A stretch of 64,000 bases of DNA from Bugula neritina (GCA_964035545.1 OZ037767.1:24010628-24074627); one strand, 5' to 3'; positions 12,201-43,266 are shown, counted from the stretch's first letter. Translations and numbers: made by a program. The notes: generated from the sequence alone by a model not told the origin.

Positions 12201-12837
12201 ATAGTATTCAACATTGAGTGATTCACTAAGACAAAGCTTTGAAAATCAAAATCATAATGTTACACTAATAGTGATAACTTAATTTTACAATTGCTTTGAA
12301 TATAATTAGAATATTATAATAACCAGCTGGAAAATTTCTTTACTCACCTTTTTCTAATATTTTTCTCAAACTTGGCATTTATATTAAAATTTTGCTTCAA
12401 TCTGGTTTTGTTCTATAACATTGTAATTATAACTCAATAGATTTAATAACCTACCTATTCTAGTTGTACTTAATAGCTACTGATTTAGTTACTCATCCTG
12501 GTTTTGTACTATGAATAGTGCAGATAGATAGTTGTACATTAGCTATTACATTCCACAATCCAGACTTAGAATATAGACTGTTTTGTTGGTCAGGTAGAGA
12601 CTATGAATATGCTGTAGTCATTAGGCAGTTACCAGTTCAATTAAAGGTAACTAAAAGTTTCCAACTTCTTTGAGACAACTGTGGACTTGTGCTCCAAAAC
12701 TACTCGGTTAAGGGACACACTGGTCTGCAATAGTTAATATTTAGTAACGCAGCTGACTTAGTTGCTGTAGTGGTAGTTTACTAGCAGCTAAGTATTGCAA
12801 AAATTACAGTTCAAATAGTGGCAGCAAAAACATCCGT

Positions 12838-12863
12838 AGTAATAGTATTAGTATTCCGAGCAA

Positions 12864-12895
<32 letters not shown>

Positions 12896-12905
12896 TTCCT
12901 AGCAA

Positions 12906-12944
<39 letters not shown>

Positions 12945-13225
12945 CGGTGGCGGCGGTGGCGGTAGCGGCGGTGGCGGTAGCGGCGGTGGCGGTAGTGGTG
13001 GCGGAAGTGGTGGCGGCGGTGGTGGCGGCGGTGGTGGTGGCGGTAGTGGTGGCGGAAGTGGAAGTGGTAGTGGCGGTAGTGGTAGTAGCAGAAGTGGTAG
13101 TAGTAGTAGTAGCAGAAGTGGTAGTAGTAGTAGTAGCAGAAGTGGTAGTAGTAGTAGCAGAAGTGGTAGTAGTAGTAGTAGCAGTAATAGTAGTGGTGGT
13201 GGCGGTGGCGGGGTAGTAGTATTAG
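12838..13225. repeat. Compound trinucleotide repeat (GTA)n/(GGC/GGT)n
   Basis: Directly visible; generates spurious poly-V/P/L/Y ORFs. Confidence 0.9.
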
Positions 13226-13361: not shown

Positions 13362-16300
13362 ATGGCAGAAGCAAATCCAGACACTGGATATTCTTTCCTA
13401 CAAGCAGCTGATGACGATGACGACGATGATGATTTGGAATTGGAGGAGCCGATCGAAGTTGTTTCGAGTCGGCCAGTTGCTGCTCAGCCTGCTATACCTT
13501 CACAACCAAAACCTGCTGACTCTGGGCCCACCCCTGCTGACTCTGGGCCCACTCTTGCTGACTCTGGGCCCACCCCTGCTGACCCTGGGCCCACTATTGC
13601 TGACTCTGGGCCCACCCCTGCTGTCCGTAGACGGACTTTTGCTGTTTCTGGGCCTACCCCTACTGCCTCTGCCCGCACCCCTGCTGTCCATGGGCGCACC
13701 CCTGCTGATTCTGATCAGAACAGAACTGCTAATTTTTTGCGTAGTCTCAAGACTGATAGAGCTTTCACTGATAAAGAACTGTATAGAGAACTGGAGAATA
13801 TGTATCACAACTGCAAGAGAAGATATAATGACGAAAGAGTAGAAGGGATAAGTGAAGATGGGACTGAATTTGTCCTGCAGAAGTTACAAGATGACTTTGT
13901 TCACTATAATCGAGTAAGTCAGTGTTGTGATGTGTAAGTTGATATTGTGAGGTGTAAGTTGTAGCTGTAATGTCTGAACTGATATTGGTACACTGTGTCC
14001 ATCATGTTCAAAGAGTTGAAGCTCTTTCTTACAAAACTATTATATATGAACCGTTAGGTGTAGGTATATAAAGGTGTGATACTATTGAGGTATAATCATG
14101 GGAAGTTCCCATTTCACCATCAGTTGTAATCTGCAGTATTTTTGATTCTATAATTCTCAATAAGACCCTCAGCACAATTTGTGAATTATTTCCTAGTTAT
14201 ATGACTCGGCAGTTAGATGTCTGTCAGTTTTTACCATTTATTTGACAATTTACATCCTTTTGTGATTAAAATGCTGTGGTTCTCCATTACTTCAGACTGC
14301 TTACCTATACCATATCTACAATTGGGTGTTTGTTTAGATATCCAATTGGTCATGAACTGCATGTTCTTTATAATAACTTGTTGAAAGGACGCTCCGTGGA
14401 GTGTCTATTTTCTTGTTGCCGGTTGCAGGATTTGTGTCCAGATTAGATATTGCTATTGCTGTAACCACATATTAGACACTGAAAACTGCCTTTTCTTCTT
14501 TAATATTCTAAAGTGTGGCCCAGTATATGTGAATGCTTTGATCTCTGTAGGTTGCCAATGTGTATACCAAAAGCATGCACAGTATGTTCATTGTACCTGT
14601 CTGGGCCTCTGCGTTTGAGAATGATACTGGGTAAGTTTACTTGGTAAATAAGCTTTATTGAGCATACAACGGTTGCTAGGTTATGTAGTAGAGAGAGTCT
14701 CCAACAGTATGTATATAAAGCATTAGCTTTTTATTTCAAAGCTTTACATAACTTGTTCTCATGAAGTCTGTATATCAACAATGCTGTAATACAACACTTA
14801 TCATGAATGCAAAGTTTTCCTTTAAGATTTAAAAAACCAATATTTGCCAATTCTGAGCCAAGGCCCTGCAAAGAGTAAAATACTAACTAAATGAATTCTG
14901 TAATTTTATAGCAATTGATTTCTGTTTTATATAGTAGGTATGTATTGTGGGTAGTTACTGCTGTGTACAAAGACTTGTGGGTAGTTACTGCTGTGTACAA
15001 AGACTTGTGGGTAGTTACTGCTGTGTGCAAAGACTTGTGGGTAGTTACTGCTGTGTACAAAGACTTGTGGGTAGCTGACCATTACTCTCTGACAGCAATA
15101 AACTAACCTGTTATTAATTTTAATTTGTCCGCCAACTTAGCTGTCAAAACATTTTTGGCTAAATTTTAACTTGCATTGGTTTTTGGTATAGTTGAAATTA
15201 TGTTGAATCTGGCAACCTTTCCATACTGTGTAAATCAAATAAAAACCTTTTATTTTTATAATATAAATTTAACCTTTATTAGCTTTGCTGCATTTTAAGG
15301 AATGTGAAGTTATCTTTACAACACAACACTTGAAGGTACAGTGTTGTGTTGTAGTAATAAGGTTGGGAAAATGTTGTGACTAGTACTACAGTAATACTGT
15401 GAGTACAGTGTTGTGACTAGTACTACAGTAATACTGTGGGTACAGTGTTGTGACTAATACTACAGTAATACTATAGGTACAATGTTGTGTTTAGTACTAC
15501 AGTAATACTATAGGTACAATGTTGTGACTGGTGTTAGTACAGTTTCGTCTAGGAATACCAACTAAAATTCTAGATCCCATCAGTTTCTCTTGCATTCTAT
15601 CAACAAAACTTGAATAAACTATTGTTAACATTTCATAGCTGGTTATTGGAGGCTATTGATTGAAGGATTTTGATAAGGCAAAACTTCCTTATGGTGTAAT
15701 GGTAACTAATGATGTACTATTTAGTTTTAAAGTGCCAGCTCACGTTGTATGACTAGCTACTTCAACACATTGTATCACATTGTATCACGTGTGCAAGGTG
15801 GCATATGACTGCCCATACAATGTTATTTCCTTGAAGGTTGGCTGTTGTACCATCATCTATTTGTATGACTACATCATGCTAACTCCATCACATTGATCTA
15901 CTCTCACGTTATAAACATCCTGACTGAAAATGATATTGTCATGTGATCATTTTCTTCATCCTACCTTTCAGGCAATGAAAACATATCATCTGATAAGCTG
16001 AAATATTTCAATTTTGTTGGTAGTTTAAACTCACTTAATTACTGGGCGTTGGATACATCATTACTTCAACAAGAAAATGGTTTCCTTTGCTCAAATCTAT
16101 TCAATGTTTAGCACCTTGCCTCGGTGTGTTGTAATTTGTTGGCTATTAGTATTTTTTCAAATGAAAAGACTCTCTGTTGCTTGATATTACTGTTTCAGTA
16201 TTCCAGCTGGTTACAGTAACTACTGGCTGTAATAAACTCTCTGTAAATTACTTCCTGATATCAGTGAACAGCTTTTCACTGGGATTTTGCTTTTGCTGTA

Positions 16301-19300
16301 TTGAAATCACTGGGAAATTCAATGTGTATTGAAATCACTGGGAAATTCAATGTGTATTGGATTATTTATTGAAGAAGCTTAGAAAATTAACAGTTTATGT
16401 CGTAGTTAGCTGATCCTTTGTGTAATCAATGAATTACAATGAAGTAAAATAAAAATAGTTTTTTAGAATGGAAAGATATGGCATTCCATTAATCCAGCTA
16501 AGTTATTAGCAAGACTTTCTTATCCCCCTTCCCCATTTTAATGATTCAGAGTCAATGTTGACTTCAAAGCTGCTCAAATGCTTGGAAAGCTGCCTATACT
16601 CATTTTATACAGTGATGGTACAATTGATTTATAGATCCCACCATTTATCAGCACAATGCCTTGCCAATAGTGGTAAAACATAGCAGCTGAATTGGATAGT
16701 TATTGAAAGCAGGTCTAGGATTCCTCGCAATCAGGGTTCTTGTTTGACAGAAAACTAAACACATTTTTTATTATCACCTGTCCAAGATCATTAGTATTTT
16801 ATCTCTGCTGACAAGCATTCTCTACAATTCTTTAGGGTAACTTTGCTTATTTGATGAGGTTGAAATCTGTGGTAATATGACTTGTGAAAATGCCATGGGG
16901 GGAGGTGATTACATTGTATAGGTTTTTATGGTCAAAGCTTATTGCAACTATTGCTTTTAAAATTTATTATTTAGTTAGCAAATTGATTGTGATTTTATTT
17001 GCTACTGCTTTGTGGTTAATATTTAGTTTTACAAGTTTCCTTCCTTTAAGTTGTGTTTATTGTTTCATAGAAATATAATGTTTATTTCACATTTATTTAT
17101 TATAGTAATAAATAAACTTTTTTATGTGTATATACCAATTATAATTATTGAAAACCTCAACAATAAAAGCCTCCTTCTAAATACCTGTTTTTTTTAAATG
17201 TTAATTTTAAACTAAACATTTTCAAGATGGGATGTTGAATTATTATTGATAGGTATATACTCTACCCAAAACTGCTTCCTCTCCGTGAATTCCTTGAGAA
17301 AGCAAAGGAGAAGAAGCCAGCGGAGAAGAAGCAAGCAGTGAGAAAATGTCTCATGTCTGTAGCTGCTGCTATTGACAGCCTGCACACACCAGTGCCTAAC
17401 CGTAGGTGAGTTCTTATTGTGTTAGTTTGTGCAAACAATGTTTTAGGTGTTCGGTTCAGTGGTTGTTTAACTGGTATATCTCTGTACCCTGTTGAAATAA
17501 ATAGCTCCCAGTTACTTTCTGTGCTTTTGTCTATTACTGTAATCAGCTTTCTCTCAGCTAGCTGTTTTATATTATAGCTTGTAGCTTTTTTATGTTTTTA
17601 TAGCTCGTAGTTCATAACCTTTTTGTAACGTCACATTGTCTATTATTTTCTAGTTGATTTCTGGTTTTGTTCTTCTAATAATTGGTAGTGTTTGCGAAAG
17701 CATTTTTCACTGTATCTGTTCTGACAAAACAGCTAACATACCCTGTGGCCAACAGTGTAACCTGTCAAAGATAAGCTATCTTGCTAAGTGTATAGAGGTT
17801 TACTTATGGTTTAAATACACAAGCTACTTATTATAGGATAAGTTTGTTTTATAAGTAGTTGATTTTAAAGTTTGGTAATTTATTATACTATTAAATAAAA
17901 ATAAACTATTGCTTGCTGGTTGGTAGGAAATACCTTTAGTTTAGACTTTGAGTTCAGACTTTAGGTATAATAACTCTCAATTCTAGCCTGCAATTGCCTA
18001 TTTCCCTTTCCATAGGGGCACAATGCAATGCTGTTTTTATATATGCCCAGTTATTGCACATGTAACCTCAGCTCTCTACACTGGTGCTTTACTTTCAATG
18101 AATATGCTGGGGAGATGAATGGGCCTATAAGCAACTCCGAGTTGGGGGTGACCTGAATGCAGTAGTTCTCGTTTATGAGTTTGGAGTATACATTGGACCG
18201 TGGAACTCCAAACTACTGCACTCAGGTCACCCCCAGCTCGGAATTGCTTATAGAACGATTTGAGGAAGACAAACCCTGTGAGTGGTTTGTGCAAACAGCC
18301 AGCTGATTTGTTTCCCTATTCTAGGATGACTATTCTTTCTCATTTTATTAATTGGTGGCGGATGTAGCTGTATTTTTCAATAAAGTATCAGTGAATATGT
18401 ACCATCAAAATATACAGTATCCCATGACCGACCACGGAGGCACATTAATAATTCATCATATAATTTAGTTGTAACAGAAGTTTTGTATGGGAAACTGTTG
18501 GATATTGATGCCATTCTGCATATATTGAAGGCCAATGTACTACCACCGAGGTGTGTGCATTGACAACGTGTGCATGCCTTCAGTGGAGAGAAAGAAAAAA
18601 GGGAAAAGAGGCAATGTGTCCGGGTTGGCTAAACTGAAACTAACGAGAAACACCAGAGGCTCGTATGAGCATGAAGCGTTGAATTCGGAAACCTCCATGA
18701 ACAACCCTTCCTTTCCGCTGGTAGGCGTTTACCACCACTAATAGTAATACTATGTAATACTTATTATATTTTAGGTATGGGTTGCTTAGTGTCATTATGT
18801 TATGAAGAGACATTTTCTGTCTTTAATAATTCTTGAAGCTTTTGTTATATTGTTACACTGAACCAGTGGTTCCTAACCTTCTTTGCTCTGTTCTCCCTTA
18901 AGAATTTAACTTCTCTCCAAACACACTTCCGTGCAGTAATAGAGCAATTTCAAAAACTTATATTCTTTCATTACATTTATGAACTTTTCTATGAGTTGGG
19001 GGTTAAAAATCTTTAGAGAACATAACTTCTAGTTCCATTCATATCAGCTAGAACACAAGCTTTTCTCAATTTCTCCAATAATGCACTTACATTTAACATC
19101 AAAGTGTGATTTGCCTGTTCAATTAGAGTACAGCTCTAGGATAGCTTGAAAATAGTTTTGGGGTTCTGTGGTAGTATTCATGTACATAATTGTACCAGTG
19201 TTGTACTGCTATATTCTCTTGTAGATTCATAAATATTACCACCACCCGGATCCCTGGAGTAGTGAAGCAGACAAGATGTATCAATATCTCAAGAAGCATG

Positions 19301-22300
19301 ACTGGTTTTCATTTGGAGTGTGTAAGTTACCAGCGAGATTATCCCAATTTGTATTGTATCTCACTTTGGGATGTGGAGTTTTCTTCACATAAAATATATG
19401 TTTACGGGTTTCAGCACCAACCTAGTAATTTCAAGAGAGATTTTGTGAAATAATTGAATCATGTGAAATAGAAACACAAATATAACGAGCAAGCTTATAA
19501 AGGGTTACCTGTACAGTAGCTCACTATTCCTAGGCCTTCCAAGCATAATGAAGCACATAAAACCTATTACTCACTCTGAGCTAATACTTTTTGAGTGAAA
19601 ACCTTTACTAAACTTGTAGCATCATGAATCTTGAATTATAGAAAATGGAAATTTCGAGCAATGAAAGTAAATTAACTGTAAATATGGGCAAAATAAACTG
19701 CATGATAATTAAAACAATAAATAAGGCTTGATTGACTTTTATTTTTTTAAAAGTTGAAGTCTCTACTACATTTTTAGATGCTCAAACCAGTCAAAAAACT
19801 AAGGCCGTTAGTAGGCCGAATAATTAAATGATAAAATTACTAAATATTAATATTTTACTTTTGCAAAAGTTTATAAGAAAAGGCAGGTATAGTGTCAAAT
19901 TTTTGGAGCACCATGTGTAACAAATTCACTATTTAACACCTTGTTTATAGTTGAAAGATTATTATCAATAGCTGCAGACTGCTTTGGCTATTTATTTGTT
20001 GTCACATCTTCAGGTGTTCTGTTATGCAGATATATTAGAAGTGATGGGAATTGTGCTGGAGAATCCTCTTCGAATAGATGAGATCCCATTAGATTCTACG
20101 AAAATTCATTATTTCCGCAAATTTAAAAAGGAACTTGAGGATGTGATCAATGAGAAGTTAAAGGAACAGAAAACTCTTTCCTCCACTTATGAAGAGTATT
20201 TAAGTCAGTATGAGTAATTCGACTGTTAATGGTCTCTGGCTTACTGTAAACAAGTATATTTGGGCTAAAGTATGTGAAATATAAAGAGTATTTAGGTCAC
20301 TTTAAGTTTTTTAACTTGTGAGAGTGAGTTGAAATTCAAAAGTACTTTGATCAATTTAGATCAGTAATCATAAGCTAACTATATGGAGTTTCCCAGGCCA
20401 AAATAGCGTTTCAGATTATGCTAGCAAACGAAGTTCATAGGTAGACATGGTTGTAGAGATTGCTGAGTGGTGTCTTGACGTAGAATCACAGGAGGAGGTC
20501 AGCCATGTGGAGTACAAGTACGAAGATAGCACCTACCATTTTGAATATCCCCTCAGCGAACCTACAGCTCACTTATTGGTAAATATATCCATGTATGTCG
20601 TTGCCTGTAAACCTCTCATTATATATGGCCCTAAGTTTACATTTATCTGTATCACTATGTTTAACACTTGAAACTCTCTAGGGGAATTCTATTTAAATGG
20701 CCATGGAAATCAAATTCTCCTAGGGCTTAAAGTCTAGGCTTGTCAACCAAGTTATGTACAACTGCAAATATTATCATTGAAATATACGCATAAAGTTTAG
20801 TGTTGGCATCAATGGCTGGGTTATCTTCTTTAGTGCATGTTTGACCGATCAGCCAGCAGAGATATGACCTTCCAGGACATCTTGGTAGAGAATGTAAAAG
20901 CAGCCACCTCTAGCTCTCGGAGTAATGGAAACAGTTTGTCTGCCAGTGGAAGTGCACTGTCTACAGATACTAATACTAAATATATCCCCATCACCTGTCA
21001 ATCTTGTCATCTACGTGACACTGGTCAGTTCTTATACGTACACTTAGAGAGATAATCTCTTAGAGAGGAATTATTTCTCCTAGTCTGTTTGACTTCTTTC
21101 ATGTAAATTAATTTTTTATAAAATCAATTAACAATAGTTTGTTTTCATATGCTGTGTTAATATACATAAATCATAATCCCTTGTTACGTTGCCTAATGTG
21201 ATTTTCTGTAGCTAATATTTCTAGCATTTAGTTGACAACAGGCATAGGGAAACATTCACAAAATCAGTGTCTAAAAGTTAGAGTATGGCTTCTGCTGCTA
21301 GTTGGGGAGTTTATAGAATAAGCATGTTCAATTTTTTATAAAATGCTTCACTTTTGCCTCATAGTTCTAATTTTACCCATTGTAGTGCCTTTGCCGACAC
21401 GTTCGTATAAGGGAAACTCTTACAAAAAGAGGCAAGAAAGTGTTCGAGCTTCCAAGTGTGACCCTAAAAAGTGTAACCAGACGTACTGCGTGCGGTGCTA
21501 TGTGAATGGAGAGCGACTATTCTGCCCTCAAGGTTACGGCTTTTCAGACCAGGGAGCTGTTGGCCATGGCACGACTAGCACCATCATAGGTTAGCTGCAA
21601 AGTTGATAGGTTTTCCTTAAAACATAAATTTGAGTTGTTTAGCACTAAGTAATACATTCGATTTCTCTTATTGCTGAGATAGTTTGTATATCTGGATAGC
21701 TTAGTACTTGTGTATAATTTCTAGTACACTTTTTGACTGTTTCAAAGTGAACTTGGTATGATTGGGGACTGTCTTAGTATGAATTTATTTCATAGAATTA
21801 CAACTTTCCCTGTATAACAAGTTTACTGTTTCTGTGGTGAACTGTCAATTGTGTAATTCTGTAAAATACCAGAGCAATAAAAGCAGCTGTTGCAGTCTTG
21901 CTAGAGAGAGAGAGTTCAGTATGTCTAGTAGCGGTGTAGTTTATACCAGTAAAAACTGTTTGCTAAGAACCTAGGAAGTTGTCCCAACATGTTGGCTGCT
22001 TGAAGCTCACTATTTACGTACTTCTTAGTTTTTCTAATCGCACAAAATATGTTTATTTCCCTGTGCGCTTAGCTAGAAGTTATTGTACTGTGCAATGTAA
22101 ACCTCCTCCACAGTAGAATTTTTATTTTTGAGTTTCAACTGTATTAAACTGTCATATTACTGAGATGCCATGAAAACAGTTTACTGTAGCTACTTCTGCT
22201 ACCATGATTTATTATACTTGACTTGAAACTGGATACTGCAGCTAACTGTTTCTTCCACTGAGTGCTAGTGCAACACCTGCTGGCATCCCTTCTAATCTTG

Positions 22301-25300
22301 CAGGTCACAGGTCAAGTTATGCCCTGATCATGTATGGCGATCACTTCATGGACCCAGAAAAGTCGCATCTTTTTGAAAGAGACGCTGACATGCTGAGGAA
22401 TGTGCTGGAACATCGACTCATCTGTGGCATTCCGTAAGATTTAACAGAACTTAATTTGTTAAACATCATTATTTTCATTCTGTTGCCAAGAAAATGCTAA
22501 ATATAACAACTGCACAAAGCTAATAAAATTGAAACATGGATTTTTATGATCATTTAATTGACTTGAATAATTGAAAAATAAAAGTTTGGGTTGGGAGAGC
22601 TATGAAGCCAGTTTTTATCCATAGTCTAATAATGCCAATGCTACAGCAGTATTGGCTATAAAGTGTTTTATTAGAAAAATTGCAAAATTTCCCAAAAAAC
22701 TTAAATGTTCAACTGCGAAGTTTTGTGTTGATGATAAATAGTAGAATATTATACTAAATATAACTATTTTACATATTTATATAGTCTTGTCTCCATGTTA
22801 AAGTCTCTCGAGTTACATGCCAGTCAGCGCAATAAATGAGTTCCTGTGTTTGCGAGTTTTCTTGAGTCTATCGAGTTAGTTGTTAGTAGGAACCGTATTT
22901 TCTTGTAGGAAAGAGAATATTGTTCACACGCCACTGTATAGTAAACCAAAAACCAAGACGGCAATGGAATTGCTCACAAAGGCTTGTGATGACCTGGTAG
23001 ATCGGATACACCGCAGATCGTGGAACCCCTCAACGTGTATGCCTGAGTTCAGTGAGACGTGTGTGAATGACGGCGAGTTCTGCGTGTTTGTGTTCTACTC
23101 TGGTCACGGCTGTAGTGACGATGAGAAATCGGACATACCATATGGTAGCTGGGTGCCATCAGCAACTTTCTCGGATGACGGAAAAACCATGTCGGCTGTT
23201 GACTTTATTTCTCAAGATGATTTGAATGAGATTCTCACACCTATCCGTAGATGTACTTCTGAAAACGACCAATGTAATGGAGCTTGCGTGTGAGTTATAA
23301 AGTACATGTCAGCTTTATGCATGTGGTGGCATCCACTTCTACTATTACTATTACTGCTACTGCCACCACTACTACCACCACTAGTACTAGTACTACCTAC
23401 AGCTTACTACTAAGAAGAGCTGTACTGCTGTATATCAATAGAGTATCATACTATATCAGTTAAATATTGTTTATTTGAAAGTTGTAATTGTTTTGCATGG
23501 TAATGATAATCTGACTTGGGTATATTGATGGTTTTGTGCACTTTTCCAGAGAGGTGGTTTACGTTACGGACTACTGCAGGCCACCTGAAGCTACAGATGT
23601 TGCATCGAATTTAGGATTGGTAACATGGAAATCAAAAAAGTCACGAAAGCAGGCTCTGCCCAAGGCTATAGTGGCCCCACGGTGGGACACCCAATCTTTC
23701 ACTATGTCAAGCTGTGATAATAGTGAAATCACATTTTGGTTTTGTACGCTGATGAGAAGTATATTTCCTGACGAGTGCACCAAGGTAAAAGAGAGCTGTG
23801 AGATTTGCGATGAGATTAGAAAAAGAATTGATAAGGATTGTTACGGAGCGTTTATTGACGGAAAGTGTCTAGAGTTACATATGGGGCACATGATAGAGAG
23901 TCACGGCCAGTACAAAACGGAGGTAGACGTGTGTGTAAAGACACCGGGGAAGAGTGATGATATGTTAATACTCGCTCACTACAATAAAGGCGGAGTGTAC
24001 TATCGAGTGTTCCCCTACAGAGAGGGTAGATTATTTATAATATTGATGTGTAGTTTTTATGAACTCATACACTTCCAAATAAACTCTAAAGTTGACCAAA
24101 ATTTGCCTCAATACAATTTGACAATAAAGTTCTGTAGTTATCATTACATATCATACTCCAGTATCTATATATCATACTCTAGTATCTACATATTACACTC
24201 TAGTATCTTTATGATATTACCAATTATTATAGCAGTACCAGTATATACCAGAAGAAATGGCATAGTACTGAAAATATGTAATATTGGGTTGTACTTGGTA
24301 AATGATATAACAAAATTCAAATTCTAGCGTTTTTGCCTTCTAAATATATATTTTATCACTTCGTTATTTAAATTAGTAATGACTCATTTTCTCTGATCAA
24401 TACTAATGTTGCTCACTCTGTACTACCTTCACTTATGTTCAATTGATCTCAACAGGTGACAAGGTTGTGGAGATAGACTTTTCAGAAAAGATAACTTGTG
24501 CTAATCTGATAAAGCATGTTAGAAATGGCGTTGGCCAGGATGTGGAGATCAGTAAGCTTTTTCTGCACAATTTATTCAACAGTAGCATTAATTTTTAATG
24601 ACACATCAGAATATATTTATCACATAAGCATGCTTGTCGCTGCATTTATTGTTCATAGATCCATAATATATGTTTAGTAAGCATAGTAAAATATCCGTAG
24701 TCTACTATGAGGTATTTTCAGGTAAAACATGGCCGTGTAAACTTTGTTTTTAACACGATTGTTTTGTGCTACATTGAGCAATCATTCTTATATAAATATG
24801 TGCATGTTTGTGTGTAAAAGCGAATTTCTAAACTGATCGGCCAATCAGAGTAACAGGTTCTGAAAAATACCAAGTTTCTCATGTGTCATTTGATGCTTCA
24901 AATCTCATCCGGTTTTTTAAAACGCTGGTGTCACGTTTTGCCCGAAGATATCTCAATGTGGAATGACCTTGAAGAGTGTCATAGTAAACACTGGGTTTGT
25001 CTGTATTCAGGGCTACTGACCAACAATCCTGGTGACTCGTCTAAGTTCTCCTTAGTCTGTGACCACACTGTCAATGATGTCTTACACTCGACCTCCAAAC
25101 TACGTCCTGGTGATAAGGCTGTCTATCCCTCTATACTCTACTACCAGACTATCAAACAGTGCATCCAGGTAACCTCTACTCTCATAGATAACTTTCAGTG
25201 TGCACATGAATAAATTATCCAGCTAATACTTTTTATTCTCCTATGCTTTATGAGTTATATAAGGGTTTTTTCACTCTTGTTAAATGGGATCATAGTTCCA

Positions 25301-27788
25301 ATCACAGCTGTTACTGAAGGCAGTGTTTAGTAACTGTTGTATATATTGAATTTCGGATAGTCTCAATTTGTTAGCATTTAACCATGCACTAGTTCACTAA
25401 CTCATTGTAGATTGAGCTCTTCGCTGTTGATGAGGATGCCAGAGATACGCTGCAGCTATGTCTAGATGAGAATGATGCTGAACGGATGGTAAGTTGACCC
25501 TTCCTGTTGAAACATGTTGCCATCAATATTTTGAAGGAGATTATTTGTGTAAATATACTAAGAAGCTGTTGGTGTTTGAAGGTAAATGAAATGTCCGACA
25601 ATCCTCTCCAGTTTCAAATCCCAGCCCGACAGTTGCCCAACCTTCTGGTTTACATCCTTCACCATCTCCGTCACTTGGAAGAGTATGAGTTGGACCCCAG
25701 TCACGTTGCCAGACAAGTTAGTCGGGGTTCGCCTACAGATTCTACTATGGCCCCCAGTGAGGACATGTACCCTACTCAAATTGCCAATGCCTCCATGGAA
25801 GGTAACCACTCACCTTATTAATTTGATGCCAAATTAGTATAATTTTTCAGATTTTTTCAGATTACTCTGTGCATATGTTTTTTCTTGATTTATCAGCATA
25901 AAGCTTTACATAAAGTCATACTAAATAAGTAAATAATATTGCTGTATAACTACTGTCGAAAATATTTATACTGAAATATTATATATTGGCTTTAATTAGC
26001 TTCAAATTTATTTGAATATTGATAATAAAAAGTAACTTTTGCTACTGCAGCTTTGATTTCATTTCTTTGGAATAATTTTGTTTATCCTTTTGCTATAAAT
26101 CAACCCCGATTAAACTTTGAAATTCAGACTGTGTTTACTTTTATTTTCAAAAATTTTAGTAAGTTTTATATTTTGATGAAATTTAGGGTGTGGGGTAACA
26201 AGGTGCCTCATGAATTATTTCTACAGGTAAAAGGTTTAAACAAACTTAAAATTCTGGTAACATCGCAATAGCCTTCAAGTGAGGGCTGGGTACAATTAAT
26301 CACTTCACTGATTGTAGAGAGAGCCAGAAACAGTTTGGCCTCATATATTTTGGGAAGAAGCGTTGATCTCAAAGCATTTAAAAGTGCCAAAAACTGGTTA
26401 GAAGTAGAAGAAAGAGCAGCGAAATATCTCAGCTCTGGCACTCAGAAAATATTTCACGTCGATCAACTAGCGTCAAGAAAATTCAGGTATTTTCCTATCA
26501 ATTATTCAACTCTGGGTTTTCCTAATAATTTGGAGAGTCCATTTGCTTAGAGTTTTCACCCCTGTGAGATCCCCTTGGGCTATGGACTGTGTGTGTTGTG
26601 CAGAGTTGTTAGCTGATGTTCTTCCTGGCATCACCAGTAACTCTGCTGGGATTTGTACCCATGACTCGCACTTGGCCAACAGATGCTTCCTTAAAGTCTC
26701 CAGGCTACAATTTAGCGTAATTTGTGACTGTAGCATTTGTCACCATCACATTATATTCACTTATACCAACTGATTGTAATAGTATTATTAACCATGGCTA
26801 AATAGATGTTTCACATGTTGAAGTAGCTGGGCAAGTTCATTTGTGATTGTTTGCTACCACAACTGCCTCCTTTACAAAATTTCATTTGGCAGCAATCAAA
26901 TAACCTGGTCTATCAGTCAAAGCAGTCACTCATTAATTCCAGCTCGTAAGGGTTAAGAGTTTGAAACGTTCTCCTTTTGAATTTGACCAAATGGAAAAAT
27001 GAAACCACTAGGAGCATGGTGTGTGTTCATGTGTGTATATGGACAATATATAGGCCTTGCCTTTTTATACTAGTTCTATATAGAACTTTTTGTAATATAT
27101 AGTGCTAAGCCTAGGGCTACACGGTGCGTATTTTCGCATGCGAAAATTGAAACCACAAGTAGCAAAGGCGTCCACTGTAGCGTCAGTGATGCGTGATAAA
27201 TAAAGCTTTCATTATTAAATCGCACTCGCTTTCAATAAAACGCAATTTACTGGAATTTAGCACTAAAATAAAGAAATTGGGCTCGCTTAATAACTACCAG
27301 CCAATTAGGTGACGACGACAGAGACGATTCGCACTTGCGTTGAAAATGCAGAGCGGCAAGTGCGAACGTTTTCTCAACGGCACAGTGGACACCTTTGCTA
27401 CTTGTGATTTCAATTTTCGCATGCGAAAATACGCACAGTGTGGCCCTAGGCTAATGTAATTGTGTTGATATGGTTCTCAATCATCTTTTAAGATACAATA
27501 ACCTAATGCTATTTATTTGCCTACAATCATAAAATGTGTCCTTATGCTGCCAATCTTTAGCTTGTGTGTGTTGGCAGCTGTTCTGTTAGTTGTGAGTTGT
27601 AGTGCAGGTGGTTGTGGCGTATGGAGTTTGCATAATGATGAGTCAGATGTTATAATAGTTCTACAATACAATTTCTGATACTGCTTGCAGAATTGAATGG
27701 CCCCGAACAAATCGTAGAAGAAATGATGAAACTTCTACCAACACATAAACATATCACCCAGTTTCTATATTTGGCTTGCAGATATTAA
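13362..27788 (+). CDS. Uncharacterised multidomain protein (~1211 aa): IRAK/Pelle-like pseudokinase + Cys-rich zinc-finger-like region + caspase-fold (paracaspase/metacaspase-like) protease + ubiquitin-like region
   Basis: 19 phase-consistent GT-AG exons with no in-frame stop: 13362-13913, 14551-14630, 17253-17405, 18531-18720, 19225-19321, 20030-20203, 20445-20578, 20834-21023, 21386-21589, 22304-22433, 22909-23289, 23550-24025, 24456-24551, 25011-25168, 25411-25488, 25612-25801, 26318-26486, 26551-26636, 27691-27788. Kinase-like motifs: DGTEFVLQKL, IVPVW, AIDSLHT..YYHRGVCIDNV, HDWFSFGVYILEV, EIAEWCLD. Protease motifs: YALIMYG..ERDADML, VFVFYSGHG, VVYVTDYCR. The last exon is uncertain; read-through would stop at 26773. 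Confidence 0.8.
13512..13712 (+). repeat. Coding 21-bp tandem repeat encoding (PADSGPT)n
   Basis: CCTGCTGACTCTGGGCCCACC units in the first coding exon. Confidence 0.9.
14946..15075. repeat. Intronic minisatellite, 30-bp unit (TTGTGGGTAGTTACTGCTGTGTACAAAGAC) x ~4.3
   Basis: Directly visible near-perfect tandem copies. Confidence 0.9.
15372..15532. repeat. Intronic minisatellite, ~37-bp unit (TGTTGTGACTAGTACTACAGTAATACTGTGAGTACAG)
   Basis: About four tandem copies visible. Confidence 0.85.
18125..18253. mobile_element. Short inverted-repeat (hairpin/MITE-like) element
   Basis: 43-bp arms at 18125-18167 and 18211-18253 are reverse complements with 3 mismatches; a related element lies at 39478-39586. 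Confidence 0.7.
27109..27451. mobile_element. PIF/Harbinger-type MITE, 343 bp
   Basis: 70-bp terminal inverted repeats (27109-27178 / 27382-27451, 4 mismatches) starting GCCTAGGGC, with TAA on both sides (3-bp TSD); no ORF. Confidence 0.85.

Positions 27789-32793: not shown

Positions 32794-43266
<10,473 letters not shown>

Follow-up and report, generated by a model that had tools for sequence, protein, structure and literature searches.

The window analysed here is a 64,000-nucleotide (nt) stretch of AT-rich animal DNA from Bugula neritina (GCA_964035545.1 OZ037767.1:24010628-24074627). On its + strand, from 13362 to 27748, lies a gene that we read from the sequence as 18 exons with a coding length of 3540 nt, i.e. 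1179 amino acids (aa) and a stop codon. The cumulative exon lengths hold a single frame, and a stop codon arises at none of the junctions. An earlier sequence-only reading had proposed at this place a many-exon gene beginning with the ATG at 13362 and encoding a pseudokinase, a zinc finger, a caspase-fold protease and a ubiquitin-like part in one chain. The many-exon + strand gene itself is borne out by our exon model, by RNA and by public gene models; its size is 18 exons and about 1179 aa instead of the 19 exons and ~1211 aa that had been proposed. For comparison we used the homologous locus in the B. neritina assembly GCA_010799875.2 (L001), which is 85-90% identical to the window in long aligned blocks. 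Since exon 11 is also 92% identical to the B. neritina hypothetical protein EB796_024864, the window belongs to the B. neritina complex or to a close sibling of it; in what follows, B. neritina means the lineage of the second assembly and of the public protein models. One of these models (P0007), from another B. neritina contig, covers the 3′ part of the gene. The exons are the following.

Exon 1, 13362-13913, + strand: 184 aa with the ATG, a poly-Asp run, repeats and an open frame; donor GTAAGT at 13914; outside the coverage of L001.
Exon 2, 14551-14630, + strand: 80 nt, by eye like kinase strands beta4-beta5 (HSMFIVPVWASAF); AG/GTAAGT kept in B. neritina.
Exon 3, 17253-17405, + strand: 153 nt, LREFLEK ... 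AAAIDSLH, resembling a kinase C-lobe from the hinge to helix E; splice sites conserved.
Exon 4, 18531-18720, + strand: 190 nt, catalytic-loop-like YYHRGVCIDN, NVSGLAK and a long activation-loop-like stretch.
Exon 5, 19225-19321, + strand: 97 nt, with HHPDPW resembling APE and with HDWFSFGV as the DxWSxG motif.
Exon 6, 20030-20203, + strand: 174 nt, the motif continued (ILEVMGIVLENPL), then a fast-evolving helical stretch; placed by phase and conserved sites.
Exon 7, 20445-20578, + strand: 134 nt, closing the kinase-like region with EIAEWCL; donor in RNA, acceptor from phase and conservation.
Exon 8, 20834-21023, + strand: 190 nt, a linker rich in Ser with the opening CxxCH of the Cys cluster; joined to exon 9 in RNA record 16.
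Exon 9, 21386-21589, + strand: 204 nt, Cys cluster C-x4-C-x4-C-x2-C-x8-CP.
Exon 10, 22304-22433, + strand: 130 nt, YALIMYGDHF ... RDADMLRNVL, which would form the opening strand and helix of the protease-like domain; RNA joints on both sides.
Exon 11, 22909-23289, + strand: 381 nt, core of the protease-like domain with the putative catalytic His (FCVFVFYSGHG); RNA joints.
Exon 12, 23550-24025, + strand: 476 nt, Cys strand VVYVTDYCRPP, a hypervariable loop at ~23586-23700, the SCDNSEITFWFC block and a second Cys/His cluster.
Exons 13 and 14, 24456-24551 and 25011-25168, + strand: the stretch earlier called beta-grasp-like; joint 24551/25011, the same in P0007.
Exons 15, 16 and 17, 25411-25488, 25582-25801 and 26318-26486, + strand: conserved, mostly helical by eye; RNA joints and a loose contig end, and P0007.
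Exon 18 (last), 27691-27748, + strand: direct junction from exon 17, as in P0007; a short tail with TAA at 27746-27748.

Splicing was followed in the contigs of a metagenomic RNA-seq run (X7) from a Bugula 'symbiont metagenome' study. These are 90-99% alike to the window and thus stem from a close relative; being contigs, they demonstrate that spliced forms exist and say nothing on their abundance. All three junctions named in the sequence-only reading (20578/20834, 21023/21386 and 21589/22304) are present as GT..AG joints, as are 22433/22909, 23289/23550, 24551/25011, 25168/25411 and 25488/25582, and a ninth joint takes the form of a loose contig end at 25801 with letters matching 26318 onward. 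Exons 7-8-9-10-11-12 are in this way linked to each other, and the exons of the Cys cluster are bridged to those of the protease-like domain. The single intronic contig has a word depth ~20-fold below that of the neighbouring exon contigs, contig depth being a coarse figure. Among the public models, P0002 from NCBI splices exon 11 to exon 12, and P0007 runs from the end of exon 12 through exons 13-17 to the last exon. Every AG/GT within the coverage of L001, which extends from exon 2 onward minus the acceptor of exon 11, is kept in B. neritina. The weak side of the model is its 5′ part: no RNA joint for the exon 1-7 junctions occurs in the X7 contigs, the one at 20578/20834 being the first seen, and these junctions rest on conservation, on phase and on a 609-aa NCBI model that starts before exon 2 and extends to exon 10.

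It is noteworthy that NCBI annotates the main B. neritina locus as three separate hypothetical models of 609, 135 and 353 aa. Together with the lack of an RNA joint in exons 1-7, this is what one would expect if two adjacent genes, one for the kinase-like region and Cys cluster and the other for the protease, had been read as a chimera. We regard such a chimera as very improbable. The model breaks coincide with 1-nt indels of GCA_010799875.2 at L001:9540-9664 (exon 10) and L001:10562-11051 (exon 12), while contigs of the same lineage from the Joint Genome Institute (JGI) carry an uninterrupted exon 12 frame (P0006), so that an assembly artefact is the most likely cause of the three-way split. 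Moreover, the RNA contigs join exons 7-12 across the presumed boundary, and the 609-aa model, which begins upstream of exon 2, terminates inside the first protease exon (10) and so ties the two halves of the gene together. The proposal of one gene thus stands. A practical consequence of the split annotation is that surveys of protein architecture based on proteomes miss this gene.

The gene is constrained along most of its length. Between the window and L001, the overall ratio of non-synonymous to synonymous divergence (dN/dS) is 0.38, with the lowest values in exons 9 (0.07), 10 (0.10), 16 (0.13) and 14 (0.15) and intermediate ones in exons 2 and 11 (0.22 each), 5 (0.34) and 3 (0.36); exon 13 shows zero synonymous changes and a dN of 0.028. 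Exons 2-17 are open in both species, assembly indels excepted. In exons 2-5, for which there is no RNA, dN lies below intron divergence, which supports them as coding; exon 6, with a dN/dS of ~2, is the exception. In exon 12 dN (0.144) is likewise higher than intron divergence (0.099). The stretches that change faster than the introns are the loop after the catalytic Cys (23586-23700) and most of exon 6 (20030-20203), and both may be subject to diversifying selection, as far as two compared sequences can suggest. Exons 4, 9, 11 and 12 each occur once in the 216-Mb assembly, in which the window lies on contig C3. That the gene is real is established by its exon structure, by splicing seen from exon 7 onward, by purifying selection and by its single copy. 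A synonymous/non-synonymous screen was also tried as an exon finder and given up as too noisy because the protein is fast-evolving.

The lineages behind these comparisons deserve a remark. RNA runs X3 and X6, which bear the organism name given for the source of the assembly, are, as opposed to X1, 5-10% different from the window and have variants in common with the B. neritina runs of 2016; two cryptic Bugula lineages appear to be filed under one organism name.

At the 3′ end we part from the sequence-only reading, which had added a 19th exon of 56 nt and a stop at 27786-27788. Neither finds support, as P0007 joins exon 17 directly to the last exon, and with the same junction in the window the stop falls at 27746-27748. 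We looked for an extra 56-nt exon that would restore the stop at 27788; suitable AG..GT intervals number in the dozens by chance, but not one has support, the best candidate showing conservation not above the intron level between the window and L001. Due to a 1-nt indel between the species the tail differs in either frame and is not conserved. The gene end is taken as 27748, with an unconstrained tail.

What kind of protein is encoded has to be judged from domain searches and folds run on single exons or on existing public models, so that scores are exon-wise throughout. Scanning ~60 pieces with Pfam and NCBIfam, we found a single recurring family, PF00656 (Peptidase_C14). Exon 11 matches its profile positions 67-90 over 26 aa with an expect value (E) of 0.0025 and 18.0 bits, and the B. 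neritina orthologue P0002 matches it independently over 57 residues (E 0.0057, 16.8 bits). Direct reading finds motifs in the order typical of C14 and with fitting spacing: YALIMYGDHF, RDADMLRNVL, NDGEFCVFVFYSGHG, a helix and EVVYVTDYCRPP. The His in FVFYSGHG (exon 11) precedes the Cys in VVYVTDYC (exon 12), and each ends a hydrophobic strand. The His is kept in the two Bugula lineages compared and the Cys in three, where the D, C, R and P of D-[YH]-C-R-P are all invariant. The site itself, T-D-Y-C-R, is not the QACxG of animal caspases, and its continuation D-Y-C-R-P-P is not the D-x-C-H-S-G of metacaspases. The death and Ig domains that flank the protease in paracaspases have no Pfam match in any exon or in P0007. 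As a signature it fits the metacaspase/paracaspase type, and the Asp two residues before the Cys, as found in metacaspases and paracaspases, would predict cleavage after Arg or Lys rather than after Asp.

Downstream of the Cys, the X7 contigs are unalignable over 23586-23696 and the loop differs by indels among lineages. The loop is followed by the invariant SCDNSEITFWFC block and then by a second conserved Cys/His cluster at 23776-23890 in exon 12, with the pattern C-x6-C-x2-C-x10-C-x8-C ... H-x2-H, which is invariant in three lineages and lies in the C-terminal half of the protease-like domain.

A number of results speak against a caspase fold. Neither exon 11 nor P0002 reaches the PF00656 gathering threshold of 21.4 bits, the match in the window being as short as 26 aa, and no domain of the gene reaches a curated threshold. 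A hidden Markov model (HMM) made from 68 pieces of canonical caspases in this genome does not score exon 11 above zero. Searching exons 11 and 12 against all PDB chains (phmmer, E up to 10) returned no useful match and no metacaspase, the YSGHG that an AB-hydrolase chain has in common with exon 11 being there by chance; exon 11 found no match in the ESM Atlas. AlphaFold, given an exon 12 alignment of three sequences, reached a mean confidence (pLDDT) of 38. These results would suit a protein in which SGHG and DYC occur by chance in some other alpha/beta fold, or in which the domain is inert or a non-catalytic scaffold. We consider this improbable, as P0002 matches PF00656 on its own account, four motifs stand in C14 order with the right spacing, and neither the His nor the Cys varies in any sequence compared, even with the nearby loop outpacing the introns. 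The blank result with the canonical-caspase profile also follows from the metacaspase/paracaspase type of the signature. The motif order and the conserved pair therefore speak for the caspase-fold protease with an intact dyad that the sequence-only reading had seen, the sub-threshold family match speaks against it, and exons 10-12 are weakly supported as a clan-CD, C14-type domain with its presumed catalytic pair kept.

The N-terminal part begins, as had been noticed, with an acidic run and genuine PADSGPT-type repeats: exon 1 holds ~9.6 copies of a 21-nt (7-aa) unit at 13512-13713. The ~65 aa that remain after the repeats are the only stretch available for a kinase N-lobe, with FVLQKL at the place of VAIK. 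The case for a kinase fold comes from the exons that follow. Because HMMER filters hide weak matches, we ran a separate test with a home-made kinase HMM, built from 24 kinase domains of the same assembly, with all filters off and each exon on its own. Exon 3 aligned to profile positions 109-133, ending at LH just before the HRD loop, exon 4 of B. neritina to positions 138-150 (the HRDLKPANILL stretch), and exon 5 to positions 185/189-203 (the DIWSLGV stretch). Among 2000 shuffles of each, P by score alone was 0.013 for exon 3, 0.15 for exon 4 (B. neritina) and, for exon 5, 0.005 in the window and 0.0015 in B. neritina. When score and place were both required, P was at most 0.001 for exon 3 (0/2000), 0.009 for exon 4 and at most 0.0015 for exon 5. 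That three consecutive exons are colinear with the kinase profile is hard to ascribe to chance, at least as judged by these alignments.

The motifs at these places suggest a degenerate kinase. Where YYHRGVCIDN stands in the window, B. neritina shows YYHRDVCIGN and with it a canonical HRDxxxxN. At the place of DFGLAK both have NVSGLAK, so that DFG is replaced by VSG; HPD stands at the place of APE and DWFSFGV is found for DxWSxG. Where exon 5 passes into exon 6, DWFSFGV followed by ILEVMG can be read as kinase subdomains IX-X. A sequence reading of the N-lobe region shows neither a glycine-rich loop (GxGxxG) nor the VAIK lysine. With the DFG Asp absent from both species, and the HRD Asp in addition from the window lineage, the domain is probably no enzyme. 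The difference between the sibling lineages in the catalytic-loop Asp, HRG in the window against HRD in B. neritina, lies at 18544-18552. This points to one lineage having recently lost a residue that would already have been useless without DFG.

On the other hand, with E up to 10 Pfam recognises no kinase family (PF00069/PF07714) among the exons of either the window or B. neritina, and even with the filters off exons 1, 2, 6 and 7, i.e. the N-lobe region, exon 6 and exon 7, give no signal with the kinase profile. The shuffle P values are moreover optimistic because the expected places were fixed after the motifs had been read. All this tells against a kinase fold and, together with the missing glycine loop, VAIK Lys and DFG Asp, would agree with a clan-CD protease carrying a long novel pro-domain. 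In that case the N-terminal half would have no kinase fold, and its kinase-like motifs would be due to chance or convergence. We think this unlikely, though it deserves to be taken seriously; it would leave three consecutive exons matching the kinase profile in order and in register with low shuffle P, the HRDxxxxN of B. neritina and the succession of subdomains IX-X over an exon boundary all to coincidence. The pseudokinase of the sequence-only reading is thus plausible as far as the colinear C-lobe motifs of exons 3-5 go, with neither a Pfam kinase match nor an N-lobe signal to go with it. We consider it probable, from the profile alignments and motifs, that exons 3-7 encode a kinase-derived and catalytically dead C-lobe.

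Between the kinase-like and the protease-like regions, the Cys cluster lies where it had been placed earlier and is nearly invariant: 66 of the 67 residues of exon 9 are identical in B. neritina (99%), and no cysteine differs between the species. Its best family match is Pfam Fer4_RLI, below threshold with an E of 0.012, and an HMMER search of 1.84 billion representatives with exon 9 brought up only two repetitive, unrelated proteins, without returning the 609-aa B. neritina model. The cluster probably binds a metal. With the sub-threshold Fer4_RLI match as the sole hint, the name zinc finger given to it is a guess, and an Fe-S site is possible.

The C-terminal third fares less well. For exons 13-17 and P0007 we found no family match (Pfam on the exons and on P0007, the ESM Atlas on P0007), and AlphaFold on P0007 gave a pLDDT of 32. 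The ubiquitin-like (beta-grasp) part that had been seen in exons 13-14 is unsupported. As to the domain order of the sequence-only reading, it holds for the Cys cluster and for the His/Cys motifs, while the kinase motifs are visible but weak.

Taken together, and with confidence slightly better than even, we favour a single-copy, expressed gene for a cytosolic protein of ~1180 aa that combines a dead kinase C-lobe, a Cys cluster and a C14-type protease. In such a protein, the dead kinase and the Cys module would form a binding or oligomerising platform. By analogy with the proximity-induced activation of MALT1 and initiator caspases, the platform could unite two protease domains, and the fast loop after the catalytic Cys could be a site of autoprocessing or regulation. 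The protein may have a role in immunity, cell death or metamorphosis; the immune or cell-death switch proposed earlier is inferred only. A bolder version, which we regard as tentative and rather doubtful, would make it an animal protease of metacaspase/paracaspase type (Arg/Lys, D-x-C), unrelated in sequence to MALT1 and to the ~190 canonical caspase matches of the genome, and fused to a dead kinase and a metal module. It would be a lineage-born, single-chain sensor-plus-executioner with a regulatory loop evolving faster than neutral DNA, as in an arms race.

Several known systems invite comparison. MALT1 has a C14 fold with D-x-C-R at the catalytic Cys, is specific for Arg, becomes active by dimerising on a scaffold and carries another domain behind the protease. 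The Bugula protein shares with it the D-x-C-R and a region following the protease, but its exons are without a death or Ig match in Pfam and no solved chain matched. Type I metacaspases, found in plants, fungi and protists, have a His motif of the FxYSGHG type, D-x-C and a pro-domain that is Pro-rich with a zinc finger. Unlike these, the Bugula site has RPP rather than HSG after the Cys, and the searches gave no sequence match among solved chains and no relative in prokaryotic genomes. To our knowledge, and by common account, animals lack metacaspases. Searches of the PDB and of prokaryotic genomes gave no evidence for a transfer. RNase L, MLKL and the IRAK/RIPK-caspase complexes resemble the Bugula protein, by analogy only, in using a degenerate kinase fold as a regulatory or oligomerising module beside an effector of death or immunity. 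They differ in that the Bugula effector would be a clan-CD protease in the same chain.

The closest parallels come from a survey of apoptosis genes in lophotrochozoans, in which bryozoans are unmentioned (Genome Biol Evol 2024, PMC11463336). It lists caspases with kinase or kinase-like pro-domains in Macrostomum lignano and Eisenia andrei, described as species-specific and without functional study. These lophotrochozoan proteins likewise have an N-terminal kinase-type and a C-terminal caspase-fold part in one chain, and since they were reported in 2024 the architecture class is already known (PMC11463336). The statement that no characterised animal protein joins these modules was therefore overstated, even though the reported proteins are canonical caspases and lack a functional study (PMC11463336). 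They can be set apart by description: the M. lignano and E. andrei proteins are among the canonical caspases and their kinase is recognised by standard tools (PMC11463336), whereas the Bugula protein has D-Y-C-R-P and no detected kinase family. It also has an extra Cys cluster between the modules and ~330 more C-terminal residues. What is new here is hence the non-canonical C14-like domain, the interposed Cys cluster and the long C-terminal region. Searches for homologues with exon 11, a stretch of exon 12 and P0007 returned Bugula sequences only, within a length window that excludes proteins of 600-1200 aa, and exon 11 likewise found no relative when run against JGI metagenome contigs and prokaryotic genomes; the gene has so far been found in the B. 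neritina complex only.

Should the fold calls be true, canonical caspases would not be the only source from which invertebrates build death or immune proteases; a regulatory kinase fold joined directly to a clan-CD protease would be another. In that event the gene would also offer a compact system for studying the control of a protease by a pseudokinase.

The DNA around and within the gene shows some further features. Directly upstream of the start codon, at 12836-13194, lie triplet-based repeats (GTA, GGT/GGC) with periods of 15 to 42 nt, which create long spurious open reading frames on both strands. Intron 2 contains minisatellites at 14945-15074 (30 nt x 4.3), 15370-15529 (37 nt x 4.3) and 16297-16359 (28 nt x 2.2). 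In the last intron there is a 76-nt inverted repeat (27108-27183 and 27377-27452), the arms of which are 92% complementary and 193 nt apart. The order of its flanks differs from that in B. neritina, and it looks like a small foldback element resembling a miniature inverted-repeat transposable element. Further along the window, 42014-42325 on the + strand is an exon for part of the ligand-binding domain of a nuclear receptor (Pfam Hormone_recep, E 2.6e-5).

Two observations concern the assembly at large. There are at least 187 exon-level Peptidase_C14 matches genome-wide, with clusters at C1:32.8-35.5 Mb and on C6 and C7, which amounts to a very large caspase expansion in this bryozoan, apparent pseudo-enzymes included. 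One apparent pseudo-caspase (L003) has STHWAG and FFDASFG at the catalytic sites. In addition, kinase matches of full length are found on dozens of unplaced contigs; they are broken by TAA or TAG, never by TGA, and become clean with the ciliate code (table 6). Examples, from among loci L037, L039 and L042-L059, are C176:33222-33977, C33:18549-19265 and C133:75718-76287. A ciliate associate thus appears to have contributed DNA to the assembly.

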